Positions 1,540-58,326 are shown, counted from the first letter of the stretch. The stretch: DNA of 64,000 nucleotides from Epiperipatus broadwayi (GCA_028023455.1 JAQFVV010000005.1:22568001-22632000); one strand, 5' to 3'. Numbers and translations: made by a program. Notes: generated from the sequence alone by a model not told the origin.

Positions 1540-1656
1540 GAACTACAAGTTGTTCTACAGTTGTATGTCCTAAAGGAACATCATGTCAAGTTCAAAATGG
1601 TTTTGCAAGCTGCCTTTGCCCAAATGGCAAAATGCCACAACCTAATGTCGGATGTG
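1540..1656 (+). CDS. EGF-like exon 1 (117 nt)
   Basis: taag|GAACT...ATGTG|gtaagt; GTTSCSTVVCPKGTSCQVQNGFASCLCPNGKMPQPNVGC. Confidence 0.85.
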
Positions 1657-1725
1657 GTAAGTTTTTCATTTTGTACATTTTTAAATATTATTAATAAGTA
1701 TTAATTTCTATGATGTTATATTGTT

Positions 1726-1961
1726 ATCATACCATTTACACCTTTTTAGACACTTTATCAATACTTTTATTTGTATTAAACTAACAGTTTCGACTGTCCT
1801 GCAGTCATCATCAGAGCTCTTGTAAGCTCTGATGATGACTGCAGAACAATCGAAACTGTTAGTTTAATACAAATAAAAGTATTGATAAAGTGTCTAAAAA
1901 GGTGTAAATGGTATGATATATTATAATAGAAATCAATACATAGGAAAAGAAGTAGAAAATT
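1726..1961. mobile_element. PLE-type hairpin insertion (family R) with two hammerhead motifs
   Basis: Near-perfect inverted arms 1726-1817 and 1826-1917, tail of about 44 nt on the right only, 13-bp direct repeat ATGTTATATTGTT at 1713-1725 and 1962-1974. Confidence 0.8.
1778..1819 (-). ncRNA. Minimal type I hammerhead ribozyme motif (family R)
   Basis: GAGCU CUGAUGA U GACUG cagga CAGUC GAAA C u GU U AGUUU. The mirror copy on plus at 1823-1866 has one stem II mismatch. Confidence 0.7.
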
Positions 1962-1984
1962 ATGTTATATTGTTGTAATATGTA

Positions 1985-3330
1985 ATTATAATAAATAAAC
2001 ATTAAAAGCTAAACTAGTCAATAAATAATCAAAATTACCCCAAATTCACAACTCAATCAAACTAGCCAAAAAAATAAACTCTAAAACACTACCAATGGTT
2101 TTCTCTACTACAAGCAGACTTCTCAAGTGTAAAGAACTACAAAATAACATATTTAAACTAAACATTACCCACAATTCCACTTACTTCCCATACACCCTTA
2201 ATATTAAAAGAACTTTTAAATAAGTTAATTGCTTCAGAATCATACATTTTTAATAATAAAGATTCTTTAATTCTTATTATTTTATATCTCTCAAAGAAGA
2301 CAACCTAAGCTTCATCAAAATTAATAGTGTGACTTGTATCTTTTTTGTGGATATACAAAGCAGAACTAAGATATTTATTTCTCACTCTACTTTTATGTAT
2401 CTTTATTCTTTTATTTAAGTTCAAACCAGACCTATATATACCTTCTTACAAAAACAAGAGATAATATACACTACTCCAGGAATAGCCTTTCTATCAAAAA
2501 ATTTCTTTGTATTCAAAGTAACATCCCTTTTCCAAGCAATTTTCTTATTTTCAAACAAATTTTACTATTTTTACATATAATTTTATAAGAAGACAATTTA
2601 AATGGGAAAAAAATAAAATCATATTTTTCTTTATCCTTTACATTATTAAAAATATTGCTATAATAAAATACTTTTAACAAATTTATCAGCGTATCCAACA
2701 CTCAAATAATTTTTATAAAATTGACCTTTTTGAAGCAAAACTACTCCACTAGAATTATTTAATCTCTTATTTCTATAACAGATACAGATTGATAGCTATC
2801 AGGTTTAATTATAAACATTAACTGTTTACTCTTAACATAATGACTATATACAAACAATTAATCCTTATATTTCTAATCACCAGTAGATCTAAAAATTTTA
2901 ATTTAACAAAATCTAACCCCCTCCTTCTATCACGTGTTTTATAGAAGGATCAAAACAATTAAACTCATTTACCAATTCCTTCAATTTATCATTCTCAACT
3001 ACAAACAATCATCCACATATCTAACAAATAATTTTAAATATAAACAGTTCTTTTTAACAATAATTTCTTTTTCCAAATGATTAATATAAACTGAACAAAT
3101 TAAAGGAGAAATAATATAACCTATTATCCACTCTTCCTTAATCTTATAAAAATTACCATTATAAATAAAATACATAGAATCCTCTAATAATAAAAGCAAA
3201 TCTTTAATAACTTTAATTTTATTTTTTGACAAAAATCCATGTTTAACCAACACAGACATAAGAACATCAATACTGCTTAATCTTTAACAGATTGATACAT
3301 ATTCTCACTATCCAAACTACCAAATACCCA
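1985..3330 (-). mobile_element. Degraded Penelope-like retroelement (RT + GIY-YIG), family P
   Basis: ORF 2999-3259 has YFIYNGNFY...IISP...YINHLE...RYVDD; FLDLLVIR thumb; PGVVYIISCFCKKVYIG at about 2430-2480; RIKESLLL C-terminus; 3' UTR HHR-like motif at 2085-2131. Confidence 0.85.
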
Positions 3331-3539
3331 ATTACTTTCCATTTTAAAATTATTAATTAATTATTAATCCAGTCCTTATGATATAAGAATTTGGATTGCC
3401 TATTTTACATTCGCAACGGTTATTATAATTTAAAATGTATACGACATAAAAATGCCCACTGTTTTCAATAAGTTTGCTTCACTTTGGATTACAATTAAAT
3501 TTGATGCATTTTGTAATAAAAAAATTGTGTCTTTATTTT

Positions 3540-4400: not shown

Positions 4401-4530
4401 TAAATTTAATTATAATAAAAATATAAATAAAAAATTAATAATATTATTAAATAACCTAATACCTTATTCAAAAACTATTAATTGTAGATTTTGAACTATA
4501 AACACCAACAATATTTCACTGTTATAATAT

Positions 4531-7500
4531 TGTAACATCCACTATGTTATTTAGAGTTTTAAATGAGTTAACTACTTGTACTCCGTGACCAAATTACGTC
4601 CTATCTATTAAATTTGTTTCATCATACAATTCAGTAAGATTTAATGGATGCAATTATTTTTCCTGGTCACGCAACACTCTTTTAACTAATGTAGCCACTA
4701 AAATAATGGGATAAAGTAAGCCAGCTTTTAATTTATTTGAAAGGTGCCAGAATTCTATATTAGAATCCACTGGCAAACATCCCTTTTTTAATTATTTAGC
4801 TACAACAAAATTATCTAGAAACTCTGGAAAATTGAGTTTCGATACAGCATTGGCAAGGTAAATTAAATTTTCAAATCATAATTAACTTTAATAAATGTAT
4901 TAATAATCATTAATAACGTACAATGAATAGGGGTATTAGAAATAAAGATTTTTATTTTAACAAATTAAAATATAAATAATAATAAAAAAAAAAACATTAT
5001 GATTTAATTAATTGGAAAGATGACACACACACTAATCTAGATATGAATTAATTAATAATAAAAAACAGTTCAATGATTATAGTTCTTAGGTACACAAGAG
5101 TCTCTTGAAGAATAAAATTTGAAGCCTTGATCGGGATTATTTTGTTATCAATTTTTATAATTGTTTGCAAACTTTGTCACAATTAGGAAAAGTTACTCTT
5201 AACTTACCGGTAAGTTGGTGTGTGTTTTTAGGATTCGGAGCTCCTAAAATTTCCATCGGTCTCTCCTGCTGGCGTCTTCCATTATTGTTCCGTTCTATAA
5301 CCGGAGAAAAGGCATGGCTGTCGTGACCCTTTTATGGCAAAAGTGGTCTTCACAGGGCTTGTTTCCATTGCTTGCTTGACGACTGGGTACTGCAAGTGGT
5401 GTACCTGTGCAGATTTATATTCCTGCCACAGGTTATGTTCATGGAGAAAAGGCATGGTTGTCGTGACCCTTTTATTGCAAAAAGCAGTCTTCACAAGGCC
5501 CATCTCCATTGCTTGCTTGATGACTAGGTACTGCAAGTTGCATACCTGTGCAGACATCTATTACTGCCACAGGTTATGCTCGTGGAGACTCCAGCTTTCA
5601 GACACGTAACTAGAAGGTATAGAGAAGACCTAGATCGAGGTTGTCCTCTTTTTATACCCCGATCCAGTTTTGAAACTTCTGCACATATCTTTTGTTCATT
5701 CTTTCATCAGCATATAAGATAATAATCTTCTACACTATCTCTTAAATTTGAGTTACAAAGTTATTATTTTTTTAGCATAATTCTGCCATCTTTAATTATT
5801 AAAAAGATTTTTCTAATTACAATCTTTTTACTTTTGGAATTTTTACTTTTCTACTGGCAATCTTTTTATTTTTGAAATTCTTTTAATTTATCTGGATCAG
5901 TAATTTGCATGTCATTTATTCTTTCCAATTTAACTTTTATTTTTAATTACATAAAAAAAAATACGAATGACAATTTTAACTTTCATTGTACGTTACTTTT
6001 AAAAAATAAATTATACTAATCAGAAAAAATCTAAAAATGTTTTTCTTTTAAAAGATCGCTAAATTTACTTTTTTTTTTAGCTTTTAAATATCTTACCGGA
6101 TGCCAATATATTTGTACCATGTAAATAAACGGTATAATACCACCACCGCGGAAGATGAGAATAAAATGGGTGTTTAAACTAATTTTATTCTTAAATTTTA
6201 AGTCTCTACTCGGTTTTTCTATACATATTTAAAATATATATTTTTAACTGTATAATCTGGTTTGGCTAGCTCGTTTTTTTTTTAAAACTATTTTTAAAAT
6301 TTTATTATTTTACTGCTACCTCAGGATGTAGTTCTCGTCCAAGCCCCATGTTGGGCACCATTGTAATGTCCACTATGTTATTTAGAGTTTTAAATGAGTT
6401 AACTACTCGTACTCAGTGACCAAATTACATCCTATCTATTAAATTTGTTTTGTCATTCAATTCAGTAAGATTTAATGGACGCAATTATTTTTCCTGGTCA
6501 CACAACATTCTTTTAACTAATGTAGCCACTAAAATAATGGGATAAAGTAAGCCAGCTTTTAATTTATTTGAAAGGTACCAGAATTCTATATTAGAATCCA
6601 CTGGCAAACATCCCTTTTTTATATATTTAGCTATGACGAAATTATCTAGAAACTCTGGAGGATTGAGTTTCGGTACAGTGTTGGCAAAGTAAATTATATT
6701 TTCAAATCATAATTAACTTTAATAAATGTATTAATAATCATTAATAACGTACAATGAATAGGGGTATTAGAAATAAAGATTTTTATTTTAACAAATTAAA
6801 ATATAAATAATAAAAAAAAAAAAAACATTATAATTTAATTAATTGAAAAGATGACACACACACTAATCTAGATATGAATTAATTAATAATAAAAAACAGT
6901 TCAATGATTATAGTTCTTAGGTACACAAGAGTCTCTTGAAGAATAAAATTTGAAGTCTTGATCGGGATTATTTTGATATCAATTTTTATAATTGTTTGCA
7001 AACTTTGTCACAATTAGGAAAAGTTACTCTTAACTTACCGGTAAGTTGGTATGTGTTTTTGGGATTCCGAGCTCCTAAAATTTCCATCGGTCTCTCCTGC
7101 CGGCGTCTTCCATTATTGTTCCGTTCTATAACCGGAGAAAAGGCATGACTGTCGTGACCCTTTTATTGCAAAAAGCGGTCTTCATAGGGCCCATTTCCAT
7201 TGCTTGCTTGACAACTGGGTACTGCAAGCGGCATACCTGTGCAGACGTATATTCCTGCCACAGGTTATGCTTGCGGAGCAAAGGCATGGTTGTCGTGACC
7301 CTTTTATTGCAAAAAGCGGTCTTCACAAGCCCGTCTCCATTGCTTGCTTGACAACTAGGTACTGCAAGTTGCATACCTGTGCAGATGTCTATTACTGCCA
7401 CAGGTTATGCTCGCAGAAACCTCCAGCTTTCAGACACATAACTAGAAGGTATAGAGAAGACCTACATCGAGGTTGTCCTCCTTTTATACCCCGATCCAGT

Positions 7501-7970
7501 TTTGAAACTTCTGTGCATATCTTTTGTTCGTTCTTTTATCAGCATGTAAGATAATAATCTTCTACACTATCTCTTAAATTTGAGTTACAAAGTTATTATT
7601 TTTTTTAGCCTGATTCTGCCATCTTTAATTATTAAAAAGATTTTTCTAATTATAATCTTTTTACTTTTGGAATTTTTACTTTTCTACTTGCAATATTTTT
7701 ATTTTTGAAATTCTTTTAATTTATCTGGATCAGTAATTTGCATGTCATTTATTCTTTCCAATTTAACTTTTATTTTTAATTACATAAAAAAAAAATACGA
7801 ACGACAATTTTAACTTTCATTGTACGTTATTTTTAAAAAATAAATTATACTAATCATAAAAAATCTAAAAATGTTTTTCTTTTAAAAGATCGCTAAATTT
7901 ACTTTTTTTTTTAGCTTTTAAATATCTTACCGGATGCCAATATATTTGTACTGTATAAATAAATGGTATA
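4531..7970 (-). mobile_element. Non-autonomous LTR element: two 1.6-kb LTRs around a 225-bp interior
   Basis: Direct repeats 4531-6136 and 6362-7970; PBS TGGTGCCCAACATGGGGC (tRNA-Lys type) at 6343-6360 minus; purine-rich GGTGGTGG next to the other LTR; ATAT on both outer flanks; each LTR has 2 x about 140-bp internal repeats (5303-5583, 7134-7414). Confidence 0.85.
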
Positions 7971-8180
7971 ATATTTTATTAGAATTTTTGTGTTTTTAAT
8001 TTCAATAAGATTACATAAAATATCTACATAATCCAATTTTTTTTCCATTGAAATACAATGACTTGTAATTTTTCATTTGTATATATTTGTATTTGAATCT
8101 ATGAAATATATAAGTGTAATTTTGACTTTCAAAAATTATAATTATTCTTGATTATTTGCAACGTATACTTTTTCTTGCAG

Positions 8181-8297
8181 GTGAAAGTCCTTGTCAGAAA
8201 AAACAATGTGGTAAAAATGCCATCTGTGGTGTCTATAATGGAGTAGCTGAATGTGTTTGCCTCAGAGGATTTATTGGTCATCCAGATGAAGAATGTC
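8181..8297 (+). CDS. EGF-like exon 2 (117 nt)
   Basis: ttgcag|GTGAA...ATGTC|gtaagt; GESPCQKKQCGKNAICGVYNGVAECVCLRGFIGHPDEEC. Confidence 0.9.
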
Positions 8298-9540: not shown

Positions 9541-9616
9541 TTTTATTAGAATTGGGATTATACCACTAAAACATGGTTTAACGAATATAATTGATTATAT
9601 TTATTTCTTATTGCTA

Positions 9617-12600
9617 TGTCTGAGGGTTTCTCCTTTTCCGAAACCAGTCAGATAGTGAAAAATAAAACTAGCATACAATTATGTCATTTTATATATAATT
9701 ATTTATTATAACAAATTAAACAATAATGACAATAGAGTGTTAATATAAGTACATATATTATAGTTAATGATAATAAAAGTAAATTTTATGTTGTTTTATA
9801 GAGTTCAATTAATTTCTTATTATTACACTCGAGTTTCGCTAATTTACACAATTCAATTCGTCTATTTACATTATAGTGACCTTAGAAATAGTTTATCCAT
9901 TTACGGCTCCATTAACAGATGCTTAATCTGTCTGCCATTCTACTATTGTGTTTTGCACTAGACTGTGCTGGACTGCGCAGAAGAAAAACGTCTAGGCTTT
10001 TATAACAGTCATTTACCATGTACAATTACAAGTACGTAAAGTTTGTAGCAGTGCTCTCTTTAATTTATTTTCTAGAGTAAATAATAACACGTGCATTAAA
10101 GGGAGGAAGAAAAAAAAATCTCTTTAAGTTCATTGTCTCCCAATGCACAAACACTCCAATCCTCCCACTCTAGAAATAAATGATTTAGTCAACAAACATA
10201 ATCTTTAAACTTAATCAGCACTCTTCATATTCTAGGAACTTTAGGGATTTTGTCCCTATCTTCAACTGTTGTATGAGTCAGGTTCTGGTTGTTTTTCACA
10301 CACAACTTCTTTTTATATGTCTCTAAATCGAGATCACTACTAGGATCAGTTTCATCCACATGCTTTTTATTTATCTTATCTTCAGGCAATGTATTTAGGT
10401 AAACATCTGGTATAGGGGTCTCATAGTGATAGCGAAGGTGATTAACATATTTTCTGAATTTCTTGCCATTTTTTATTTTTACAAGACATATTTGCCTTTA
10501 CAATATTTGTGTTATAATGCCAGGGATCCATTTATGTTTTAGCAAGTCCTGTATTCACATTTTTTCACCCGGTAAAAATTTTGTAGCTTGGGGAAATTTA
10601 CTACTCTTAGCCCTAATGGGTAACAGCTGATACAAATGGGTGCGGAAAGAGCGAACATTAATAACTCTGTTGTAGTCTTCCCAGTTGCCATATTAGGTGT
10701 AAAATGTTGCACATGCATGGCTTGCACTAAGGCTTCAGGCAGGTTTTTTAAATTTAATTTTTTAAAAGTATACTTCTAGATGTTGTACCACTTGCTCTGT
10801 GATGCTATTACTTTCAGGATGATATGGAGGTGTAAGTATATGTTTTATTTCTCTGTTTCCCAAGAAATCTATAAAATTTTTACACATAAAGCCAGGTCCA
10901 TTATCGATTACAATTAATTCAGGGTAGCCATGTGTAACAAATAACTCATTTAAAATACTAATAGTACATTCAGCGCTGGTTTTCTTGACCAATCTATACT
11001 CAGTCCAATGTGAATAAGCATTTACCAAAAGAAGTATTAAATGTTCATTCAATGGACGAATGTGGTCTAAATGAATGTGTGTCCAAGAAAAAAGTAATTT
11101 TTCCCATGATTCCAATTGTTTGGATGGCAGTTTGGTGTTTGTTGACAATTTGAACATCTTTTAACTAAGTTCTCGATATCATTAGTCAAATTGGGCCACC
11201 GCATGTATGATTTAGCAAGCACCTTCATTCTCATGATTTATCAATTCCCATGATGTAATAGATTTAACATGTGAGTTCTACCTTCAGTAGGAACAAGTAT
11301 GCAATCATTGTTCAAAATACAACATTACAGGCAGAGAGTCCATCTCTTGCAGTCCAAATCACTTTATTTGCAACTGCAGGACATTTCATTGGCCAATCAT
11401 ATTTTATCCACTGCATTAATTGAACATAACCTTTATCACTCTTCATCCAATCACACGGTTTACTTTTTTGGAATTCATTATGTCAATATAATTTATCTCT
11501 TTAATTACAAATATCTTTTCCTTATTATCCGATAATCTGGAAGGGCATCAAATGTCCAATCTTTTTTCCTGGTTTATAGATCAATTGAAAATTGTAATAA
11601 GATAATATATTTACCCATCGTAGCATATGTTGGCTTAAATAATTGGGGATATTTTTTTCATAACTGAAAATTCTCATTAGGAGGCGATGATCAGTGTAAA
11701 CGATAAAACTCCACCCATTATACGTATTGGTGGAACTTCTTAACTGCAAAACCCACTGCCAACACTTTCTTATCCATTTGGCTATAATTTCTTTCAGTAG
11801 ACGTCAGTACTCTAGAGGCATAAGCAATTGGATGTTCACCTTCATAGCATGGGTGTGAAATCACAGCTCCACTGCCGTATTCGGATGTGTCAGTTGTAAT
11901 ACTAACAGCTAAATCACTATGGTAATGTACTAATAGTGCCTCTGAAGTTAATAAATCTTTTGCAGTGTTAAATGCCTTGTCTTGTTCATTATTCCAAGCC
12001 CAACATTGTTTTTTTTAAGTAATTGATACAACAGAGATAATAAATGCAATTTTCCTTTCAGACAGCTTTAATAAAATTGAGAAGTCTTAGAAATGCTTGC
12101 AGTTCTTTTATATTCTTAGGTTTCTCCGTATTCTTTATAGTTTTATTTAGTTTGAATCTGGATGTTGGCCATTAACCTTTATAATGTGTTTAAGAAACTT
12201 AATATCTCTCATGGACCAAATACATTTATTCCCATTTAATTTGGCCTTTGCTAGTGCAAGTTTTGAACAAACTAGTTTCTGTCATGCCGATGATCAAAAT
12301 GTCATCCAGATATGGGATTACACCATAGATTTAAGTAACATATCCATTTTCACCTGGAAGACATTTGGTACAATCAATTAGGTGTAGTTAAAATAAGTAA
12401 CTCCACTGTATTTTCAGTTACAGGGATTTGCACTTCTTGTATGCTCGTTACAGGGATTTGCACTTCTTGTATGCTCGGAACCGGATAAGATCCCTTGTTT
12501 ATATATTTGTTAATAGTGATCCTATAATTGCCGCATAAACAAATACTCCTGTCTGATTTTATTATAGTCACTACAGGTGTCACCCAAGATGAATCTTCAA

Positions 12601-14552
12601 TAAGTGTTAAAACTCCTTTAGCCACCAAATCGTTTAATGTTTTTTCTACTTTGTCTCTTAATGCAAAAGGCACCTTAGGCAGTTTACGTACAAATGCTTT
12701 TGCATCTTTTATCAGTTCCATGCCAACTGGTCTCATTCTAAGATCTGTTAATCCAGGCATAAACAGTTCTGGATATTGCTTTATCATTATAGTTTTTACA
12801 TGAACAGTCTTGAAAATATTCACGTGAATTCCTAAGGGAGAAAACCAATTTCTTCATAGTAACGGGCTAATATCTTTAATTACAACATATAACCCAAGAA
12901 ATCTTCACCTAGAATTTAATGTTATTGGACTTGTCATTTTTCCCCCATGTCGATTTTATTGCTGTTTATATCTGTTACCATGACATCTGTTTATGTAGAT
13001 CAAACTCATTTTTACAGTTTTCTCTAATCCTCATCCAGCCTTTATGAGAGATTAACAACAAACCAGCACCACTATCGACTTCCATAGTGACCTGTTTACC
13101 ACAAACTTGCAAATCTAAAAGAATGCCATCCACTTTAGCATGGCTATTAGTTACAGTCTTGATAGATGATTTCTTGTATTCCTCCTCTCCCCGAGATTTA
13201 TAATCTGACTTTTTCTTAAAGATTCACCCTCCTTCAAATAGCAAACCACAGCTAAGTGCCCTCTAGTGTTACAAATTCTGCATAATTTGTCTTTATGCCT
13301 GCAAATATTTTTTACATGTCCTGATTTCCCTCAGCAAGTACATTTTTGTTGTTTAATCTGCCTGCTGGGAATCAGGATTTTTTTTTTTCGTTAATAAATG
13401 AAAATCTTTTTAAATTATGTGAGATCTGGTGTATTCCGATGCTAAATTTAACATGGCTTCTTGTGCGATGCATTTATCCATGGCACTTTGTACATTATAT
13501 CAGGATCACTCAATAAAACCTTTCTAAAATTATTGTCAGCCATCCCATACAAAAATTGTTCCAGTAGAAAGACATTTAATTCTGAACCAAAATCACAGTC
13601 TTTAGCTAACTTTGTTAATGCTAAATCGAAGTCCACGTATTTTTCTCATGACAACTGCATCCTATTTCTTAGCTTAAGTCATGCTATCCATTTTGAAAGT
13701 TTTGGAGCAAAATATTTATTTAATATTTGTGTAAATTCTTGATATGGTAGGTATTTCAGGTCAGTAGCCAATTGAATAATGTCTTGTCCTGCAAAATACA
13801 GAAGTGTGGAGATTTTATAATGGTCGTCTTCAATCTTGTTCATAAACATATAATATTCCACCTGCTCAATATAATTTTTCCACGAGTTGACATTATTTAT
13901 GTTGAACTCATGAATTATTGAATTAAAAGTAGCCTTAATTAATTAGTTTCTTCTACCGAGTTTATGAAGTGCATCACTCTAGTTATGGTTTTCAAGTTAT
14001 TGAACTAAGCACCACTCTACTATGTCTGAGGGTTTCTCCTTTTTAGAAACCAGTCAGATAGTGAAAAATAAAACTAGTATACATTTGTGTCATTTTATAT
14101 ATAATTATTTATTATAACAAATTAAACAATAATGAAAATAGAGTGTTAATATAACTACATATATTATAATTAATGACAACAAAAGCAAAATTTATGTTGC
14201 TTTATAGAGTTCAATTAATTTCTTATTACTACGCTCGAACTTCAGTAATTTACACAGTTCAATTCGTCTATTTACATTATAGCAACCTTAGAAATAGTTT
14301 ATTCTTTTATGGCTCCATTAACAGTCGCTAATCTGTCTGCCATTCTACTGTTATGTTTCTGACTGTGCAGAAGAACTTCTAGGCTTTTATAGTAGTCATT
14401 TATCATCTACAATTACAAATACATTAAGTTTGTAGTAGCGCTCTCTTTAATTTATTTCCTAGAGTAAATAATAAATAATATGTACATTAAAAAGGGATGA
14501 AGAAAAAAAATACCTCTTTAAGTTCATTGTCTCCCAATGCACAAACACTCCA
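9617..14552 (-). mobile_element. Decayed Ty3/Gypsy LTR retrotransposon (gag-PR-RT-RH-IN)
   Basis: LTRs 9617-10158 and 14023-14552 (TG...CA); PPT AGAGTGGGAGGA; PBS-like TGGTGC near 14014; gag with two CCHC; protease MEVDSGAG near 13075; YLDD at 12301-12312; RNase H TDH motif; integrase 10762-11157 (DNGP, PPYHP); many stops and frameshifts. Confidence 0.93.
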
Positions 14553-15102: not shown

Positions 15103-15213
15103 ATCCTCCTGAACCTACATGTAGACCTGATGATTGTCCTGAACATTCCCACTGTGTATCTAATACAGAATGTGAGTGCGATGATGGTTACATGCTCCAA
15201 GGAGATGTGTGTG
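15103..15213 (+). CDS. EGF-like exon 3 (111 nt)
   Basis: taaag|ATCCT...GTGTG|gtaagt; PPEPTCRPDDCPEHSHCVSNTECECDDGYMLQGDVC. Confidence 0.85.
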
Positions 15214-16745: not shown

Positions 16746-17003
16746 AAACCACTAAACATCACATGATCACCATCTCTTATACTAGCACATAACTGTTATT
16801 AAACAGGCAAAATTCTCCATACAGTAGGTGCAGTGCTCTCAGATCCAAGGCTCCTCACTGATGAAGGCCATAAGCCAGAAACTAGTCTGGGGATTTTGGA
16901 TGAGTAGGAACTAGATAGGGATTTTATGCACAAGCCTTCTGGCATCCATTGATTACTCTGTGTGCACAGGGTGGCACTACTGTATGGAGAGTTTTGCCTG
17001 TTT
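16746..17003 (+). mobile_element. Non-autonomous hammerhead-bearing element (family H) inserted in an EGF exon copy
   Basis: Inverted ends of about 32 bp, tail of about 50 nt on the left arm, direct repeat AATAAAGATTGTT at 16733-16745 and 17004-17016. Confidence 0.8.
16851..16894 (+). ncRNA. Minimal type I hammerhead ribozyme motif (family H), sense to host gene
   Basis: CUCCUCA CUGAUGA A GGC cauaa GCC A GAAA C ua GU C UGGGGA; palindromic ACUAGU stem III (dimer type); atypical A.A at the base of stem II. Confidence 0.65.
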
Positions 17004-17291
17004 AATAAAGATTGTTCCAGTAAACAATGGGAAAGAATGCCCAACAAGAAAGCCATTTGTGTTTGCACTATTAAAAAGACAGTCAACTCTAATGAAAAAT
17101 ATTGCATGCTGTATTTTATCACCAAAGAGCAATTCAGTTACCTTTTGCTTATTCTACATGTGATTGCTTTGTCCCAGCTTTTTTTGATTTGAACTGAATT
17201 TGATACCATTCTAAATCAATAATAAAATTGGGAATATTTTTTTATATCATTAGCTTTTTATTTGATTTTATATCTTCATTAACTTTTTTAG

Positions 17292-17412
17292 TGCCATATA
17301 CTGAGGATTGCTCCAGAAATACTGCGGCAAGAATGCCCAGTGTATTATCAAAACCCAAAAGTCATTTGCGTTAGCCCTGTTGAAATGATAGGGAACCCTA
17401 ATAAAAGATGTA
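17292..17412 (+). pseudogene. Frameshifted EGF exon copy (121 nt) that keeps AG and GT: candidate poison exon
   Basis: Two 1-nt deletions relative to the 123-nt neighbours; in-frame TAG if spliced in phase 1; ttttag|TG and TA|gtatgt. Confidence 0.75.
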
Positions 17413-17601
17413 GTATGTTATATTTTATTGTTGAAAAGCAATTCTTTTGACTTTTTGCTTACATTGTGTTCCTTGCTTTGCTGACTTTTTTGTTTGTTTG
17501 ACTTTGATTCTGTTCTAAAACCTTTAAATAAAATAGTTGTTGTTTTTTAATTTTTTTTTTACTAAATCATTTGATTTTACATACTTATAAACTTTTTACA
17601 G

Positions 17602-17724
17602 TGTCGTATAATGAAGATTGTTCCAGTAAACACTGTGGCCAGAATGCCCGGTGTGTTATCAAAAACAAAAAGGCTGTTTGCGTTTGCCCTGTTGAAATGA
17701 CAGGAAACCCTAATGAAGAATGTG
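17602..17724 (+). CDS. EGF-like exon 4 (123 nt, micro-array)
   Basis: ttacag|TG...TGTG|gtacgt; VSYNEDCSSKHCGQNARCVIKNKKAVCVCPVEMTGNPNEEC. Confidence 0.85.
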
Positions 17725-17922: not shown

Positions 17923-18045
17923 TGCCATATAGTGAAGATTGTTCCAGTAAGCACTGTGGTAAGAATGCCCAGTGTATTATCAAAAACAAAAAAGCTGTTT
18001 GTGTTTGCCCTGTTGAAATGATGGGAAACCCTGATGAAGAATGTG
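17923..18045 (+). CDS. EGF-like exon 5 (123 nt)
   Basis: tttcag|TG...TGTG|gtatgt; VPYSEDCSSKHCGKNAQCIIKNKKAVCVCPVEMMGNPDEEC. Confidence 0.85.
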
Positions 18046-18213: not shown

Positions 18214-18336
18214 TGTCCTATAATGAAGATTGTACCAGTAAACACTGTGGCCAGAATGCTCAGTGTGTTGTAAAAAATAAAAAAGCTGTTTGTATTTGCC
18301 CTGTTGAAATGACAGGGAATCCCGATGAAGAATGTG
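18214..18336 (+). CDS. EGF-like exon 6 (123 nt)
   Basis: ttccag|TG...TGTG|gtatgt; VSYNEDCTSKHCGQNAQCVVKNKKAVCICPVEMTGNPDEEC. Confidence 0.85.
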
Positions 18337-18535: not shown

Positions 18536-18658
18536 TGTCATATAGTGGGGATTGTTCCAGTAAGCATTGTGGGAAGAATGCTCAATGTGTTATTAAAAAC
18601 AAAAAAGCCATTTGTGTTTGCCCTATTGAAATGACAGGCAACCCTGACGAAGAATGTG
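18536..18658 (+). CDS. EGF-like exon 7 (123 nt)
   Basis: tttcag|TG...TGTG|gtatgt; VSYSGDCSSKHCGKNAQCVIKNKKAICVCPIEMTGNPDEEC. Confidence 0.85.
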
Positions 18659-19070: not shown

Positions 19071-19193
19071 TTTCATATAGTGAAAATTGTTCCAATAAAC
19101 ATTGTGGCAAAAACTCCTTATGTGTTACTAAAAACAAAAAAGCCATTTGTGTTTGCCCTGTTGAAATGACAGGAAACCCTGACGAAGAATGTG
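19071..19193 (+). CDS. EGF-like exon 8 (123 nt)
   Basis: ttttag|TT...TGTG|gtatgt; VSYSENCSNKHCGKNSLCVTKNKKAICVCPVEMTGNPDEEC. Confidence 0.8.
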
Positions 19194-19394: not shown

Positions 19395-19517
19395 TGCCAT
19401 ATATTGAAGATTGCTCTAGTAAACACTGTGGCAAGAGTGCCCAGTGTGTTATCAAAAACCAAAAAGCCATTTGTGTTTGCCCTGTTGAAATGACAGGGAA
19501 TCCTAATGAAGAATGTG
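19395..19517 (+). CDS. EGF-like exon 9 (123 nt)
   Basis: ttgcag|TG...TGTG|gtatgt; VPYIEDCSSKHCGKSAQCVIKNQKAICVCPVEMTGNPNEEC. Confidence 0.85.
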
Positions 19518-19716: not shown

Positions 19717-19839
19717 TGCCATATATTGAAGATTGCTCTAGTAAACACTGTGGCAAGAACGCCCAGTGTGTTATCAAAAACAAAAAAGCCATTTGTGTCT
19801 GCCCTATCGAAATGATAGGAAATCCTGATGAAGAATGTG
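19717..19839 (+). CDS. EGF-like exon 10 (123 nt)
   Basis: tttcag|TG...TGTG|gtatgt; VPYIEDCSSKHCGKNAQCVIKNKKAICVCPIEMIGNPDEEC. Confidence 0.85.
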
Positions 19840-20031: not shown

Positions 20032-20154
20032 TATCATATAGTGAAGATTGTATCAATAAACACTGTGGCCAGAATGCCCAGTGTGTTGTAAAAAACAAAA
20101 AAGCCATTTGTGTTTGCCCTAGTGAAATGACAGGAAATCCTGATGAAGACTGTG
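20032..20154 (+). CDS. EGF-like exon 11 (123 nt)
   Basis: tttcag|TA...TGTG|gtatgt; VSYSEDCINKHCGQNAQCVVKNKKAICVCPSEMTGNPDEDC. Confidence 0.85.
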
Positions 20155-20351
20155 GTATGTTGTATTTTATAGCCGAAGATCAATTCTTTTGACATTTTGC
20201 TTGTCTTGTGCTCATTTGCTTTGCTGGCATTTTGTTTTGGTTTGAATTTGATATTTTTATTTTAAAAAATTATATAAAAGTGATATTTTTTTTATTTACT
20301 TTTTCATATTAAATCAATTGACTTTATGTATCTATAGAACTTTTTAAACTG

Positions 20352-20471
20352 TTGTCTAGTGAAGTTTGTAGTGATAAATACTGTGGCCACAATGACCAAT
20401 GTGTTATCAAAAACAATAAAACTGTTTGTATTTATCTGTTAAAATGATAGGGAACTCTAATACAAAATGTG
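20352..20471 (+). pseudogene. Decayed EGF exon copy
   Basis: Consensus acceptor lost (aactg|tt), Cys>Tyr, 1-nt deletion giving TGA; donor gtgtgt. Confidence 0.7.
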
Positions 20472-20649
20472 GTGTGTCATATTTTATTGCCAAAAGGCTT
20501 CTTTTCTCTTTTTTGTTGATATTTTGCTTACTTTGTGTTCATTTGTTTTGCTGGCTTTTTTAAAAGAACATTCTTAAATGATTAAATAAAATTGGAAAAT
20601 CTTTTGTTTCACTAAAACCTTCGACTTTCTATATTTATAATCATTTCAG

Positions 20650-20761
20650 TGGCATGTAGTGAAGATTGCTCCAGCAAACACTGTGATAAGAATGCCCAAT
20701 GTATTCAAATAATCTGTATTTGTCTTGATTAAAATGATTGAAGATCCTGATGGCGATTGAT
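20650..20761 (+). pseudogene. Decayed EGF exon copy
   Basis: AG intact, but internal deletion and in-frame TAA (ACSEDCSSKHCDKNAQCIQIICICLD*); weak donor gttcat. Confidence 0.7.
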
Positions 20762-21918
20762 GTTCATTGTATTTTATTGCTGAAGTGTACTTTTTGTTTG
20801 ATTTATGCTCAGTGTGCTAATAACTATTTTTAACTTTTATTGTGGTATTTGTTGCTTTTTCTGAATTAACCAGTTGTTGGAATATTATCTTATACAATAG
20901 AATTATTCTTTTTTTTTTCACATTCTACAGTTAAGATCACATTATTAAACACTGCTTCTATTTGTATTTTTTCTATTGAAATGACTACTGATTTTGATTT
21001 GGAAGATATGATAGGTAGTATTTTACTGCTTATATTGGACTTTTTTGCCACTTAATTTCTGCTCAGTGCTTTTAGGATTTTTTTTTTTTTATTTGTATGA
21101 TATCTGTTGTAGATCTAAATTAGCAACTTAGTTGTAGATTACTATTTTCAAAAAATAATTTTTACAATTTTCAATATCATAATGTGAAGATTCTAACATT
21201 AAACAGTATGAAGAAGTGTTATAAAAGAGTAAAATTAAGGACAGTTCAGAGGCAGGACTGATAAAAGTTATGTGAATGGAGTTATAATTAAAAAGTGAGT
21301 CTTTGAGAACCTGAGTCATACCAAGGAGATTTTAATCAATTCCTTAACAGAAATTAATTTAAGGGTGATACATTGTAAACCTCTATGAAACATCTTGACA
21401 GTTTAGAAAACTATTTTCCACTAAACGGAATGATGGAGCATTATAACATAATGCTGACTTGTGCTTCCTTCCAGCGATCAGAAAATTACTAGTGGAAATT
21501 ATTTCAACACACACCAGAAAATTTCCAAACATATAAAGAAGCTGTGATGCATGAATTCTACATTGCAACATGAGAATGATATAATATCAAATTATCACAA
21601 GAGAGATACAGGTTAGACTTGTACTATGTTTTGAAAGCTTTGATGACTTGCACTTTGTCATATTCCCAAATATATTATTAGGCATAATCTACTATATAAA
21701 TTAAATCAAATGATTGTATGTGCAGACAGAAATATTGAGCAGGTATCAGATTTTATAATTCGAAACATAGAATGTTTAATATTAAAACAGGCATGTGATG
21801 TAATTTTTAATATTGCAGTTGTTTTTTTTAATCAACCTTTTAAGTTTTTTTTACAATTAAATTATGAAGTTTAATGTACTTATAACTGATTCAATCTCGA
21901 AGAATTTAAAATAATTTA

Positions 21919-26434: not shown

Positions 26435-26566
26435 TTCCTATTGGTGAAGATTGTAGCAGGAAACATTGTGGTATTAACGCTCAGTGTGTTATTCAAAACA
26501 GGAAGGCCCTCTGTGTTTGTCCTGTTAGGATGACAGGAAATCCTGACAAGGAATGCATTCCAATTG
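26435..26566 (+). CDS. EGF-like exon 12 (132 nt)
   Basis: ttttag|TT...ATTG|gtacgt; VPIGEDCSRKHCGINAQCVIQNRKALCVCPVRMTGNPDKECIPI. Confidence 0.85.
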
Positions 26567-29689: not shown

Positions 29690-29818
29690 TGTCTCCTGGT
29701 GAGGACTGTCACAATAAACACTGTGGTAAAAATGCCCACTGTGTTGTTCAAAATGGAAAAGCTGTCTGTGCTTGTCCACAAGAGATGGCAGGGAACCCCG
29801 ATGAAGAATGTGTTCTTG
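29690..29818 (+). CDS. EGF-like exon 13 (129 nt)
   Basis: ttttag|TG...CTTG|gtatag; VSPGEDCHNKHCGKNAHCVVQNGKAVCACPQEMAGNPDEECVL. Confidence 0.85.
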
Positions 29819-31677: not shown

Positions 31678-31806
31678 TGATCCCTGGTGTGGATTGTAGC
31701 AGTAAACGTTGTGGTAAAAATGCTCATTGTATTATTCAGAACAAGAAAGCTGTCTGTGTTTGTCTAAAGGGTATGATAGGAAATCCTGAAGAAGAATGTG
31801 TTAGTG
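31678..31806 (+). CDS. EGF-like exon 14 (129 nt)
   Basis: ttttag|TG...AGTG|gtatgt; VIPGVDCSSKRCGKNAHCIIQNKKAVCVCLKGMIGNPEEECVS. Confidence 0.85.
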
Positions 31807-32960: not shown

Positions 32961-34352
32961 ATATTATTATATAATTTCAACTTTTACTAATTTTCTTCTT
33001 TTTCTGTGAGTATACTCATTTATTATCAAATATTATATAATTTCTTAACTTTTTTAGTAATAAGTATATTTATGTTTGTTTATTCTAATGCTCTCCGCAA
33101 TCTTGAGGACATACTATCATATATCTTTTTATTCTCTCTATATATAAAAAGTGTTCTTGCTATTTTCTTTTCCATTATTTGTGACAATCATAATACAGTG
33201 GCATTTAAACAGTTTACTTTATATCAGTTGCTATGTGGTTTAATTTTTGGTAGAGTGGTACATTCTGGAACTTGAGGTCCATGGATCGTGACCTACCTCT
33301 GTTTCTGTTACTCAAACTTCTTAACTTTCAAGCAATAAACCATTTGATTTTTTATTACACCATATCAGTTAGTTTTACTTTAAAATTACAGTGAATTGTT
33401 TTTTATATTGTTTCTGTAACCTTATATTCACTTATATTCATCACTTATTTCTAACATAATTGTTATTATATGAAAAGTTTTACTTGTCTTGTACTATAGC
33501 CTCTATTTAATCTCACCTTTTGTCTTGTGATGCTTGAATTTCACATGATCTCCCTTGCAACTAAGCATTCATTTTTTTAGATATATATATAAACTTATTT
33601 TTTAAGGTAAGATTTACATAGTACATTGTTTTGACATTATCTTATCAATCAAATGGCCTCAAAGCATTTGGTATTGTTTTTCTTTTATAACTAATTCCCA
33701 TTGATTTGTATTTACCAAAGTAAAGCATATTTTATAATATTTATGAATAATGTAAGTATAATTAACATATGATAAATTAAATTGCTTTTACAATTGAAAC
33801 ATTATTTAATCATTAATATTGTTATTTTCCTTGTTGATCAGCTGACTATTATCTTATTATTGTTTGGAAGGATTTGTATCACTCTCTCATATTGAATGAT
33901 TTTTTGTGATTAATATGATGTCTTTTCTTAATTACTTTAATATATTAAAAACCATACTCATGTTAATATAACAGTTTGTAATTAATTAGTTGGAGTAGTA
34001 TTGTCTTTCTTTAATGTGATATGTTCATATAATTTAGCTATAAGGTATGTTGCCATATTGTTCTGTTCTAATATTTTTATACTTGTCTGAATTCAGAAAG
34101 AAGCCTTTATGCTTTTGTATTTCTAAATGGAACAATTAAAAGATATTAATAATATACCTTGTTTAGGAAATATTTCATTTGATTAAATTATACAAAATCA
34201 TTTATCAAAATTTCTAGAATTTTATTCAAGGTTTTATAACTTTTTATTAATTCTTTTTTGATGTTTTTAACACTGATATTGTTTTTAAAATGATTGCATT
34301 CTTAACTGGTATATTTTAATTCTGTTTTATTTCATGTCTTAAATACTTGTAA

Positions 34353-34480
34353 TGTTCCCTAGTGTCGATTGTAGCAGTAAACACTGTGGTAAAATTGCCC
34401 AATTTGTTGTTCAAACAGGCAAACTGTCTATACTTGTCCAGATGATATGGCAGGAAACACTGATAAAGAATATATTATTG
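34353..34480 (+). pseudogene. Decayed 129-type EGF exon copy
   Basis: 128 nt (frameshift), acceptor AG>AA, donor GT>TT, several Cys codons lost (TTT, TAT). Confidence 0.8.
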
Positions 34481-34578
34481 TTATTATATCTGCACTTGAA
34501 CTAATGAAATGGATCTAAAATTGTTTTTTAATCATGTTCAATGGTTTTATTACATTATGCCTGGAGTAATACTGCTTT

Positions 34579-36822: not shown

Positions 36823-36951
36823 TGCCTCCTGGTGTAGATTGTAGAAGTAAACACTGTGGTAAAAATGCCCAGTGTGTTGTTCAGAACAAGAAAGCTGTCT
36901 GCATTTGTCCGGATGGAATGGCTGGAAACCCTGATGAGGAATGTATTATTG
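36823..36951 (+). CDS. EGF-like exon 15 (129 nt, macro-array)
   Basis: ttgtag|TG...ATTG|gtatgt; VPPGVDCRSKHCGKNAQCVVQNKKAVCICPDGMAGNPDEECII. Confidence 0.88.
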
Positions 36952-39456: not shown

Positions 39457-39585
39457 TGACCCCTGGTGTGGATTGCAGCAGTAAACACTGTGGTAAAAAT
39501 GCTCAGTGTGTTGTTCAAAACAGGAAAGCTGTCTGTATTTGTCCAGATGGAATGGCTGGAAACCCTGATGAGGAATGTATTATTG
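39457..39585 (+). CDS. EGF-like exon 16 (129 nt)
   Basis: tcatag|TG...ATTG|gtatgt; VTPGVDCSSKHCGKNAQCVVQNRKAVCICPDGMAGNPDEECII. Confidence 0.88.
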
Positions 39586-42102: not shown

Positions 42103-42231
42103 TGACCCCTGGTGTGGATTGCAGCAGTAAACATTGTGGTAAAAATGCCCAGTGTGTTGTTCAAAACAGGAAAGCTGTCTGTATTTGTCCAGATGGAATG
42201 GCAGGAAACCCTGATGAGGAATGTATTATTG
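42103..42231 (+). CDS. EGF-like exon 17 (129 nt)
   Basis: ttatag|TG...ATTG|gtatgt; same peptide as exon 16. Confidence 0.88.
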
Positions 42232-45217: not shown

Positions 45218-45346
45218 TGACCCCTGGTGTGGATTGCAGCAGTAAACATTGTGGTAAAAATGCCCAGTGTGTTGTTCAAAACAGGAAAGCTGTCTGTATT
45301 TGTCCAGATGGAATGGCTGGAAACCCTGATGAGGAATGTATTATTG
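45218..45346 (+). CDS. EGF-like exon 18 (129 nt)
   Basis: ttatag|TG...ATTG|gtatgt; same peptide as exon 16. Confidence 0.88.
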
Positions 45347-47095
45347 GTATGTTGTTTGTCCTCCACTTAAGGAAATGTATTTAAAATTGCTTGGCTTTAT
45401 CATGTTGCAATGGTTTTACTATATGGTGCCAGGAGTTACACTGCTTTGACATGAATGGGTGTTGGTTTTGCTTCTGGGAAAATTATTAGAGCATTTAAGA
45501 TATTTACCAGTATTTTTAAGTTATTAAAATTATTTAATGTTAGTTTGATCAATGTTTTTTATAGCTTTTTCAATGACAAATTCTTTAAGTGTAATCATTG
45601 ATTGTTTTCTTTTTTTAAAATATATTTTCCCCTTCATTAGTACAATAATAAAGATTCATGAATTTGAGTACCATAATTCAACAGGAAAATGTTTGATACA
45701 TGTATTTAACCAATTCTTATTTATGGATCTGAGTCTTGGATATTTAACAGAAGAGCAATAGAGAGACTTTAGATCATCCAATAAAGTATCAGAGAGGTGT
45801 ATAATAGGAGTAACAAGAAGAGATCAAAAACAAAATGCATGGTGAGAAAACAAACAGATATCACTGATATCATTGAAGAAATTAAAAGATTGAATTGGAG
45901 CTTGTTAGGAGAAATGATAATACATGGACAATAGAAGTTTTAAATTGGATATCAAAAGATTGAAAAAGACCTACAAGTATAGAAAATATGATTGATGGGT
46001 GGATGAAATAAGTAAATATGCTGGTATAATATGGGGAAATGTGGAGAGACTATTTTGCAGTGAATTGATAAAGCTTGAAAATGATGATGTTAATGGGTTT
46101 GGGCTTAATCTTACATTTTTGGTTCTTCAGTGTCTTATGACCTATCAGCAACAAACCATTTGATTATTTATTTATTTGAAAGTATTAAAAAAATTAAAAA
46201 TGTAATTTTTAAAATATAATTAAGAAATAAACAAATTTAAATATTTATTCACTTTTATTTATCACACAGTGATCTAGTAATCGTTTCAGCCAATTTATCC
46301 TTCTATGTATTATATTGAACACTACTTTATTATCTGAAGCAGTTTTCGTATTAATAATTATATGAATGAGGCACTGGGTAATAAAATAAATAAATTGTTT
46401 ATGGGTTGGGGGGGGGGGGGCTGTAAGAAATTTGATTGTCAAAAATTACAGAAGGACTTGATCCATGGTTTTTGTAATTTAGAGGCCACATCACACTAAC
46501 CGATGCATACACTGATTTATGTGCTATTGTGTTCATATAATCAAAAGAAAAAAATTACGGATTTCAATAAGATAAAGTTAATTCAAAGACATCAAGTAAA
46601 ATGAGTTTCAGTGGTCTGTGAATTCAATATTAGGTTGATGTTCAGGACTTATTTTACTGAAAGAAATATTTCAAATGATAAGCATTTTTTAAATTGGACT
46701 GAATATTTCAATGATTGTTATTTGTGTGCAAATATGTAATTATGCTTTGATACTCTGCCATTCTAAATATTAATGTAAAAAATACTGCAACAGACTTTAA
46801 ATATAAAATTTAGAAAGATTTATTGTATCAAGTATACTTGCAAAGCTTTCATATCATATTCATGGTTTGTCTGCTGCTAACATTAATTATTTACTGATTT
46901 GAACCTATTTGATTTTTGGTTTATTACATAATCATTTTTTATAAACACTCTTATAGTAGTATTTGTGTAACAAGAGAATAATGGATAGAGGTTGTTAGAC
47001 AAGATGGATATATATGGAGAGGTTGTTTGTTTTGAATTGTTAATAACAAATTGTGAGATGAGATAGTGATCATGTGATGTTTAGTGGTTTATAAT

Positions 47096-48527: not shown

Positions 48528-48656
48528 TACATCCTGGTGTAGATTGCAGCAGTAAACATTGTGGCAAAAATGCCCAGTGTGTTGTTCAAAACAAGAAAGC
48601 TGTCTGTGTTTGTCCAAAGGGTATGGCAGGAAATCCTGATGAAGAGTGTGTTAGTG
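48528..48656 (+). CDS. EGF-like exon 19 (129 nt)
   Basis: ttatag|TA...AGTG|gtatgt; VHPGVDCSSKHCGKNAQCVVQNKKAVCVCPKGMAGNPDEECVS. Confidence 0.88.
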
Positions 48657-54940: not shown

Positions 54941-55729
54941 GTTATATATTTTTAATAAAACTACTTTAAACCTAATTCAAAATTAAACATATATTTACCG
55001 ATGAGGTGGCAGAAAATACCATCTCATTACAATACCTTGAAGTTTCATTGGCTAAAGTCAGATTCATCATTTAATCTAAAAAAAAAAAACCTTAGCAATT
55101 AAATATCATGACACTAACTTGCATACTGCTGTTCAGCAGCAAATTCTTTTTTCTACCACATTTACGCCACCTTGTATAAGTTTTAGCAATCAATAGATAT
55201 TGAACTAATTTCAGATTTATATAAGTGTGTTGGCTTAGATTGAAACATTAATATGATTTTTAAATTTGGGCTAATTGCTTAATAAAACAAAAAAGTAAAA
55301 TGTGACTTCTAGAGAAAAAGTTTATTAGATCCAAAAAATCCAGGAGCATTGCTTCATGTGTCTGCCATCTTTTTTATAAATAAGCCTAATACAGTATGAC
55401 TAAACACTAAAGTATAAAGTGCATAATTCATTTGAATGTTTAATTTTCTGTTAAATACAGTACTTCTTGTTTATGAAAAGTTGTTAAGGTGGAATAAAAT
55501 AAGAATAAATGTGTTATTATCTAATATATTTAATTTTAAAAAAATCTTCAAATTTAGAGACTTTTTAAATTTTATATGGCATTCTAATAAAGTAATTTAT
55601 AATTTATTGATTGACTATTTTACACTTGTTGCTGGAGCTTAGTTTGAAAACTTCCAAAAGAGCTTGTAATTTTAATGAGTTCGAGTTTTTTTCATATGAT
55701 GTGATGATATATTATCTTAACTGTTTTAG

Positions 55730-55858
55730 CGCCACCTGGTGTGGATTGTAGTAGTAAACACTGTGGTAAAAATGCTCAGTGTGTTGTTCAAAATGGAAAA
55801 GCTGTTTGTATTTGCCCAGAAGGGATGGCAGGGAATCCCGATGAAGAATGCATTAGTG
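55730..55858 (+). CDS. EGF-like exon 20 (129 nt)
   Basis: ttttag|CG...AGTG|gtaaaa; APPGVDCSSKHCGKNAQCVVQNGKAVCICPEGMAGNPDEECIS. Confidence 0.85.
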
Positions 55859-56252
55859 GTAAAATATCTTTCCTTCAATTAAAGAAATGTATTGCCATAT
55901 GCTTAGCTTTTACTCCATTGCAGAGCTTTTTACTATATTGGGCCAGGGATAAAGTGCTTTGATAAGCTTTTGCTTTTGGAATTTACATCGTTTAAGCTGC
56001 CCAGCTTCTAGAGTTATGTAAGATCAGTTTATTTTTATTGCTTCACTGTCTTACCAGTAGCATTTCTCTAAAACAAAATTAGTTTTCTTTCATGATAAAG
56101 AACAAAAAAATTGTGAAGAAATTGATTTAAAAAAAGTACAAATATAAATAAATAAAATTGATTATTGGTATGAAATCTTGTATGTTCTCAGACTTACTGT
56201 AATATTGTAAATATTAATTCTTATTAAGCGCAATGTCAGCATGTAATACATA

Positions 56253-56351
56253 TATAAGGCTAAAACCTTAGTACATGCATTATGATTTGTAGAGGTCTCT
56301 CTCGTTAAAATTAAGCACTCAAGGTGCATGTACTAAGGTTTTGGCCTTGTA
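56253..56351. mobile_element. Tiny MITE-like inverted repeat
   Basis: aaggctaaaaccttagtacatgca / tgcatgtactaaggttttggcctt. Confidence 0.5.
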
Positions 56352-58197
56352 ATATTGTAATGATTTTTTTTTGTTGGATTTACTCATTACTATTTTTTAA
56401 TTTCAGAAAAAAAATGAGATATAAATAAAGGTTATCTATTTTTAACTAGAAATCATATTGTTTAGAGAATGTAAATGCTTAAAATGTTTCTAAACTGATT
56501 TTGTTTTAGAGAAATTTATTATATGATTATTTAATTTTATGCTGCTCTGTGTGGATTTTAATATAGTAATAGATTATCAGAATAGAAAGCTGAAGATGTC
56601 TAAATTATAGCCCATTCTGTCACTTCTGATACTTATGTTTATCTGAAAGTTTGTGATGGCAGCATTTTATTGTATTTATATGTTGGGCTATCATCATTAA
56701 ATTGTTAAATGTTTTTTTTTAAAATCTAATTGTATTTATATTTTTCAAATATGTTCAACTCTTTAGTGTTTCAAGGGCGTTTATTTCCCTCTTCAGTTGT
56801 TTCTGGCCTTATCAGTGATGGTACTAGCATGGGAGTCAAACTGCTGTTCCTTAGATTCGTGAACACTGAATTTAAAGTGACACTGTACTAGTTATTTTTT
56901 AATTATTATTTCTGATGTTCATACATCACATAATCTCCCAAACTAATGATTCAGTTGTTGTTTTTTATTTTACATTGTAAAATATTTCAACTGACTGTTA
57001 TAAATGTCACAATGGATAATAAGTTTTATATAATAAAAGTAAGTCATCCTTTGAACAAATACATATTTTTTAAAGATTTCTTTGTTGCAATATTTATTGT
57101 TCTAAGCATTCTTATTTATTCTGTGTCATCTATTAAATGTTTTATCACAGAACATATAATTTAAAGAAATATTTACTTCAGCTATATCATCTATTTAAAG
57201 CTTGAGTAATTAATAGATGCTAGATAATAGTATTCATATCCAATGCTGTCCTGTACATTTTACCAGAAGAAATGATGTACCATTTTGTATAAAATTAATA
57301 AGGTCACAGTTTTATACAAAGTAAATATTTTTACAAAAAATAATCAATTTTATGCTTTTTATTTATTCTACAAGCGAGGACGGTTATTTTCAGGGGGGAA
57401 GGGGGGCAAGTAAGTAGCTGGCACCAGACCTGATTCCAGACTACTCTTCAAATTTATGGTCTTAATTAGTGATTCTCAAAACTTTTCATTGATGAGGGTC
57501 ATAAACTAGTTGGAGATATGGAAAGATAGCACTGAATAAAGATTTGATAATCAATACTCTATAGCATTTATTGATTACTTAAGCTTTCACTAGATGGCAG
57601 ACATGGAGTAAAAAAATAATAATTTGCTTTTAAAAAGTATTGTATATGATGTGTTCATATGATGATTTGTTTGAGGGAGGGGGACTACTTTCTCAACTTT
57701 TTTTTGTTCAGTATAAATTTGAATTCAGTTAATAATAATAATATAAAATAATCCAATGTTTAGTACTCAGTATTCTGAAAGAAGTTTTAGTACTGAAAGT
57801 GACAAAGTTGGATCATGATCTATAGACTATATATTACAATATAGTTCTCTCATTTATTGGTAAAACTACCCAAAGAAATATTTGACATATTTTGTCATTT
57901 GAAAAATAAGAAATATTGAAGTATTATTTTGGAAATTTATAATATTGATTTTAAATGACTGCTGACGATGATGTTGATGGATCCTTTAGTTTATTTACTT
58001 CAACTAAAATTCTTTAAATTATGGAGAGACCCAATATTTGCTTAAAGTTTATAAATCACAAGACACTTATTTTTAACTGATTTTTTTACTATTTGTATTA
58101 CGAGATTTGAATTTTAAATATTTTCTGCTAAGTTAATATCGTTCTTGAAAATAAACTTGTTTAATTTTTTCCCCATTTATTAACTTAAATATTTTAG

Positions 58198-58326
58198 TGC
58201 CCCCTAGTGTGGATTGCAGCAGTAAACGATGTGGCAAAAATGCCCAGTGTGTTGTTCAGAACAAGAAAGCTATCTGTATTTGTCCAGCTGAAATGACAGG
58301 AAACCCTGAAGAAGAATGTATTATTG
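58198..58326 (+). CDS. EGF-like exon 21 (129 nt)
   Basis: ttttag|TG...ATTG|gtatga; VPPSVDCSSKRCGKNAQCVVQNKKAICICPAEMTGNPEEECII. Confidence 0.85.

Follow-up and report, generated by a model that had tools for sequence, protein, structure and literature searches.

Dumpy is a giant apical extracellular matrix protein composed of EGF, DPY and ZP modules, and in Drosophila most of its repeats lie in large exons. EGF modules are also encoded singly, in exons of phase 1-1, the textbook unit of exon shuffling in Patthy's sense and the type known from fibrillin, Notch and the LDL-receptor/EGF-precursor. Here we describe a locus of Epiperipatus broadwayi in which 21 exons of this kind follow one another in a stretch of 64,000 nucleotides (nt; GCA_028023455.1 JAQFVV010000005.1:22568001-22632000; hereafter the window, with positions counted from its first letter). 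The window is probably an internal part of one very large plus-strand gene whose product is a multi-EGF protein of the matrix type, either secreted or anchored in the membrane, and we regard this product as functioning in the manner of a Dumpy-type giant matrix protein, without assigning it to Dumpy.

Of the 78 coding exons of Drosophila dumpy, every internal one except a single exon has a length divisible by 3, and transcripts of the gene differ in content, as seen from reverse transcription PCR products without exons 6-7 or 35-50 and from one expressed sequence tag without exons 53-69 (PMC2930355). The E. broadwayi gene is likewise giant and is divided into numerous small exons whose lengths are multiples of 3, and the EGF sub-type C-x4-C-G-x-N-A-x-C ... 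C-x-C-x5-G-N-P-x3-C is common to both. The two differ in that the DPY modules of Dumpy alternate with EGF modules, whereas none lies between the EGF modules of the window, and in that one module here corresponds to one exon. Dumpy's ZP domain, PIGSFEAST-type spacer and membrane anchor are not in the window, both ends of which the gene exceeds. An EGF/DPY-array protein of Planococcus citri (P0167 / P0168) has predicted isoforms that differ by a clean 109-residue, two-module block.

Frame-safe duplication and shuffling and the tandem EGF rod are features shared with the class 1-1 EGF exons of the fibrillin and Notch type. In contrast to these, the array modules show no calcium-binding consensus (D/N-x-D/N-E/Q before the first cysteine, C1, and an aromatic residue after the fifth, C5): they read [SP]-[YP]-x-[EV]-D-C1 and C5-P-x-x-M, with Met replacing the aromatic residue, and the EGF_CA family of Pfam matched none of them. 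The copies here are also much younger and more uniform, and their units still align through the introns. Caenorhabditis elegans FBN-1, a fibrillin-related, EGF-rich apical matrix protein with several splice isoforms from one gene region (PMC4395870), is similar in being large and rich in EGF repeats, but it mixes calcium-binding EGF modules with a Ser/Thr-rich region and other domains, and no sequence relationship was shown that goes further than the EGF fold.

The array was delineated with an EGF six-cysteine pattern (C-x2-7-C-x3-8-C-x4-12-C-x-C-x6-16-C), together with a six-frame scan for cysteine-rich, stop-free stretches. Over the whole window the pattern matches 21 times on the plus strand and not at all on the minus strand; 50 block shuffles of the window gave a mean of 0.02 matches and a maximum of 1. 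All 21 exons (e1 to e21, plus strand, 1540-58326) encode one EGF-like module each, have a length divisible by 3 and are of phase 1-1, so that the original prediction of intact cassette exons, any subset of which would join in frame, was borne out in every particular. Exon lengths are 117, 117, 111, eight times 123, 132 and nine times 129 nt (111-132 nt overall). Each exon is flanked by an AG acceptor after a pyrimidine-rich tract and by a GT donor, mostly G/GTATGT (the slash marking the exon end), and the shortest intron between array exons, from e5 to e6, measures 168 nt, exactly the minimum that had been given. Joined in silico, the 21 exons yield 873 codons with 126 Cys and no stop. Beyond these exons, no other cysteine-rich exon was found on the plus strand of the window, which is AT-rich (25-34% G+C). 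The window contains no open reading frame of 150 residues or more and so gave no sign of a second gene or of an autonomous transposon, and at the gathering threshold no part of it matched an Rfam family.

Single mRNAs contain neighboring array exons spliced to one another. Five small RNA runs were found, all in the form of Logan contigs, which lose rare variants and are interrupted at repeats, and four of them (X1, X3, X4 and X5) were compared with positions 15050-21049. X1 comes from the same species (no mismatches over three contigs), and X3, X4 and X5 come from relatives with 3-9 differences per exon. RNA contigs cover e3-e11, and depth is nil or close to nil in nearly every intron bin other than those with expressed repeat elements, which indicates that the contigs represent spliced RNA. 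The original prediction had staked itself on the repeats being transcribed, and over e3-e11 they are. Contigs cover e3 in all four runs, with no mismatches in X1. One X1 contig joins e4 to e5 with no mismatches, an X4 contig joins e5, e6 and e7, and joints between e6 and e7 and between e10 and e11 are present in X3, X4 and X5, with GT..AG ends and anchors of 56-90 nt. Every well-anchored joint (4>5, 5>6>7, 6>7 and 10>11) thus connects neighboring exons. An X4 contig also carries a junction of two exons of the type found further downstream in the array, the second of them e15-like (...ATTATTG/TATCCCCTGGTGTGGATTGCAGAAG). Apparent skip joints from e3 to e5 and from e3 to e6 (X3), and from e4 to e10 (X3 and X5), were discarded because their anchors of 27-36 nt fit several exon copies: e4 and e9 have 2 mismatches over their final 36 nt, e9 begins with the same 27 nt as e10, and 2 mismatches separate e4 from e6 over the opening 27 nt. 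With exon ends and starts so nearly identical, these joints may be misplaced ordinary 9>10 and 3>4 junctions, or may represent alleles; the relatives from which they come are 93-97% identical.

The RNA contigs also bear on the extent of the gene. In X5, exon e3 occupies positions 5915-6025 of a contig of 6026 nt, and it is terminal in contigs of X3 (1316 nt) and X4 (1757 nt). Judging from its place in the X5 contig, the transcript probably has ~5.9 kb 5' of e3, and the run of 21 modules would account for a minor share of a protein whose length is ~2,700 residues or more. At the other end, the donor of e21 is open, implying that the gene continues past the window.

The consensus of the array modules is xDCSSKHCGKNAQCVVQNKKAVCVCPxxMxGNPDEEC, the six Cys columns are invariant in the module alignment, and successive array modules would be separated by linkers of 6-8 residues, taking neighboring exons as joined. 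The residue variation that had been pointed out between copies (K/Q/I after CG, and PVE/PDG/PKG/PQE) is real in the translated exons. Most differences are fixed between the two tiers of the array described below, and only column 30, a loop position, has more than five residue states (8 states). Since the modules are nearly uniform, exon choice could vary the length of the protein but hardly its sequence, and extra modules would mainly add length rather than recognition diversity. The best Pfam scores of array modules stay below the cut-offs (EGF_3, 21.9 bits against 28.5; PF00008 EGF, 14.3 against 21.5), which single short modules rarely reach, and a match of single modules to the Pvs28 EGF family is also below threshold. 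AlphaFold, run on the module alignment, predicts two beta-hairpins (strands 16-20/23-27 and 33-35/39-41) with a pLDDT of 88.5. Compared with the PDB by Foldseek, this model has EGF domains as all 50 of its 50 best matches, at TM-scores of at most 0.66 when normalized by module length and with E-values that are weak on account of its length of only 42 residues. A sequence search of the PDB returned a single match, an EGF module of NELL1.

Relatives of the modules are distant, multi-EGF and mostly Dumpy-like. In a protein-atlas look-up, the nearest entries were arthropod clusters containing Dumpy_DPY together with EGF_3. When the 21 modules were combined into a profile and compared with 1.84 billion representative proteins, 806 matches were obtained; in the best of them, a Dumpy-like protein of 6710 residues, 55 stretches matched. 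Among ten matches that were looked up, two have insect names (automatically annotated as Notch-like) and the rest are unnamed metagenome proteins. No orthologue was found by this search, in which the best module score against any library protein was ~42 bits, and no close protein relatives of 86-275 residues were found with the stop-free stretch 36696-37166 as the query and the module as the scored part.

Comparison of the copies among themselves shows that purifying selection has kept them as coding sequence. The ratio of nonsynonymous to synonymous differences per site (pN/pS) is 0.20 for e4-e11, 0.26 for e13-e21, 0.15 for e15-e19 and 0.00 for e16-e18, and synonymous differences between copies amount to up to 0.26-0.42 per site.

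We consider it rather probable that the array consists mostly of constitutive exons of a giant multi-EGF protein, expanded by tandem duplication at two scales with partial loss of copies. Most or all of the intact exons would be constitutive, and the joined modules, being tightly linked, would build an extended, rod-like EGF series. Of the two models that the original prediction had left side by side, the one that agrees better with the data is that of a very long modular protein like Dumpy, given the co-splicing of adjacent exons and the ~5.9 kb 5' of e3 in a relative, whereas the Dscam-like combinatorial model does not hold up. In that model, one or a few exons per array would be chosen for each mRNA in a mutually exclusive way, producing combinatorial recognition surfaces, and we regard it as extremely improbable here. 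The tandem, homologous exons of equal length, made by duplication as in the insect Dscam1 exon clusters, do give a superficial likeness, and column 30 is a loop position with several states. Single contigs, however, hold neighboring exons (4>5 and 5>6>7), and such co-inclusion in one mRNA contradicts a one-of-N choice. Introns of at least 168 nt with uniform GT-AG ends offer neither steric nor spliceosome incompatibility, exons divisible by 3 mean that nonsense-mediated decay cannot clear multi-exon mRNAs, and an inverted-repeat search of 15214-20400 returned nothing but low-complexity pairs of A/T-rich sequence and the two arms belonging to a hammerhead-bearing element, with no docking or selector elements found. 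Each exon here encodes a whole domain, in contrast to the half domain of Dscam1, and diversity among copies is low (pN/pS 0.15-0.26, with three exons encoding one peptide). We know of no mechanism that would enforce mutual exclusion in this array.

Skipping in the style of dumpy, with the exons mostly included but some of them, or runs of them, omitted by tissue or stage to give length isoforms, is a possibility that we take seriously but rate well below constitutive splicing. The frame neutrality of all exons would permit it, and it has precedents in the Drosophila dumpy mRNAs that lack exon blocks (PMC2930355) and in the two predicted P. citri isoforms. All of the long-anchor joints connect neighbors, though, and the candidate skips rest on the short anchors from relatives that can be read as 3>4 or 9>10 junctions or as alleles. 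Several observations nevertheless weigh against fully constitutive inclusion and could reflect block skipping. The e3-bearing contigs of X1, X3 and X5 end 1-2 nt beyond e3, and X3 has two continuations after this exon, with depths of 373 and 237 compared with 700 for e3 itself; a branch directly after a unique exon is beyond explanation by repeats and could be due to alleles or to alternative acceptor exons. In addition, e8 has no depth in X1 and X4 (it is covered in X3 and X5) while its neighbors are covered, as would be seen with low coverage or with skipping. Constitutive inclusion is weakened further by the nature of the data: minor skipped isoforms are invisible in Logan contigs, the RNA comparison spans 15050-21049, with e12-e21 lying outside it and represented by one junction of their type in a relative, the link of the 6-kb X5 contig to one transcript is our inference, and the ends of the gene (signal peptide and anchor) lie outside the stretch seen. 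A more specific proposal, and an unlikely one in our estimation, is that of a regulated, length-variable exon set in which e3 joins different array entry exons and copy number differs between individuals and sister species. Such a set would have left its traces in the ~60:40 continuations of X3 and, in three runs, in the ending of contigs 1-2 nt after e3. If true, one gene would give rise to a graded series of EGF rods of differing length. The locus as a whole points to no new mechanism: frame-neutral EGF exon arrays and block skipping have already been described for Drosophila dumpy.

It has also to be considered that part of the array, especially e12-e21, is recent duplicate DNA that is unused in mature mRNA and is intact merely through its youth, which we think quite improbable. 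Copies have been gained and lost at this locus, five of them having already decayed; the e16-e18 units, being 93-97% identical, are young; and the region from 21 to 58 kb lies beyond the stretch compared with RNA. All ten exons of this part, on the other hand, keep their frame, their six cysteines and both splice sites, and the X4 contig from a relative contains a junction of two exons of their type. Moreover, the low pN/pS (0.26 for e13-e21, 0.15 for e15-e19), at a synonymous divergence of 0.26-0.37, indicates that the older of these copies have been kept intact through much synonymous change.

The duplication history is recorded at two scales, e1-e3 being divergent and members of neither tier. 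The eight exons e4-e11 recur with a period of ~322 nt (the tandem-repeat finder reported a 322-nt period across 17263-20499), and the ten exons e12-e21 are spaced 1.9-7 kb apart. Long-period units align through their introns in a self-BLAST of the window, for example 39375-40850 with 45136-46615 at 86%. An identity matrix and a tree, calculated from each exon plus 80-nt flanks, separate one clade, consisting of e4-e11 and four decayed copies (d1-d4), from another, consisting of e12-e21 and a fifth (d5). Within the latter, e15-e18 form a young block with 87-97% identity. The two tiers of tandem duplication that had been proposed are thus backed by all three analyses, and the loss of copies has to be added to the picture. 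The array grew as exon-plus-intron units were multiplied in successive rounds of unequal crossing-over or of segmental tandem duplication, with a ~322-nt unit for e4-e11 and a 2.6-3.3-kb unit for e15-e19, inside the wider e12-e21 tier, followed by the decay of some copies.

Three exons lie ahead of the short-period array. Exon e1 (1540..1656, 117 nt, phase 1-1) encodes a divergent EGF-like module with weak matches to TILa and EGF_Mua-3 of Pfam, e2 (8181..8297, 117 nt, phase 1-1) an EGF module with the motif CGKNA and sub-threshold matches to EGF_3 and the Pvs28 EGF family, and e3 (15103..15213, 111 nt, phase 1-1) a divergent EGF/EB-like module, the last unique one before the array begins. The short-period exons, each of 123 nt, start with e4 (17602..17724), which is joined to e5 (17923..18045) in X1, as e5 is to e6 (18214..18336) in X4; the joint from e6 to e7 (18536..18658) has a side of 90 nt. 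Next comes e8 (19071..19193), the most divergent intact copy of this tier (ENC, KNSLC), behind the longest intron within the short-period array (412 nt). It is followed by e9 (19395..19517), matched by an X1 contig without mismatches, and by e10 (19717..19839), whose joint to e11 (20032..20154), the final intact short-period exon, has sides of 56-78 nt.

The long-period tier opens with e12 (26435..26566), at 132 nt basal in the tier and divergent, and continues with nine exons of 129 nt, all on the plus strand like the rest. Exons e13 (29690..29818) and e14 (31678..31806) precede e15 (36823..36951), the first of the young block, in which e16 (39457..39585), e17 (42103..42231) and e18 (45218..45346) encode the same peptide. 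The tier is completed by e19 (48528..48656), e20 (55730..55858), whose donor reads G/GTAAAA, and e21 (58198..58326), the last EGF exon of the window.

The five further copies, all of them decayed and none included in the original count, were uncovered with a DNA profile of the array exons; all lie on the plus strand. Pseudo-exon d1 (17003..17121) has a 14-nt deletion and has lost cysteines, and its 5' part is severed by a hammerhead-bearing insertion. In d2 (17273..17428), the acceptor (ttttttag) and the donor (gtatgt) are kept, and two 1-nt deletions lead to a frameshift and stops; RNA depth is nil in X1, X4 and X5 and 0.34 in X3. As inclusion of d2 would bring stops, it is a possible poison exon. 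Pseudo-exon d3 (20332..20487) has lost its acceptor and a cysteine, contains stops and has low RNA depth in X3 and X5 only. A 12-nt deletion, an insertion, stops and a lost donor mark d4 (20637..20763), at which RNA depth is zero. In the long-period tier, d5 (34334..34491) has lost its acceptor (TGTAAT) and its donor, carries a frameshift and has three cysteines replaced.

The insertion that splits d1 (16750-17003, ~254 nt) is flanked by a 13-nt target-site duplication, AATAAAGATTGTT, and has 32-nt inverted arms (16796-16827 and 16977-17008). Inside it, on the plus strand at ~16858-16884, lies a hammerhead-like CUGAUGA...GAAAC core; an Rfam search of 16650-17100 with E-values up to 1 gave no match despite this readable core. 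RNA word depth over the insertion (16737-17016) is 8,000-150,000 in all four runs, compared with 10-700 for the exons. A further intronic segment, 15450-15649, stands out in X1 but in no other run, with a word depth of ~7,000 and numerous contigs and variants, and is probably another expressed repeat family. Other repeats lie in the introns of the window. Intron 1 contains two direct copies of a 1.6-kb element without a long open reading frame (4529-6139 and 6360-7973, 94.7% identical), each carrying a 140-nt tandem duplication (5303-5588 and 7133-7411). A pair of 0.55-kb direct repeats (9614-10158 and 14020-14552, 87% identical) is present in intron 2. In intron 17, a 68-nt unit occurs three times at 43269-43472 with 94% matches, which adds to the greater length of that duplication unit.

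The array has a practical consequence for annotation. Stretches of more than 30 nt at the ends and starts of several exons are identical, and short-read assemblies will break or mis-join a gene of this kind. For the biology of these proteins, the locus offers a clean and young case of how a giant modular matrix protein grows, in which phase 1-1 keeps each new copy in frame. The five decayed copies, one of which was interrupted by a hammerhead-carrying mobile element, are evidence that the locus loses copies in addition to gaining them.

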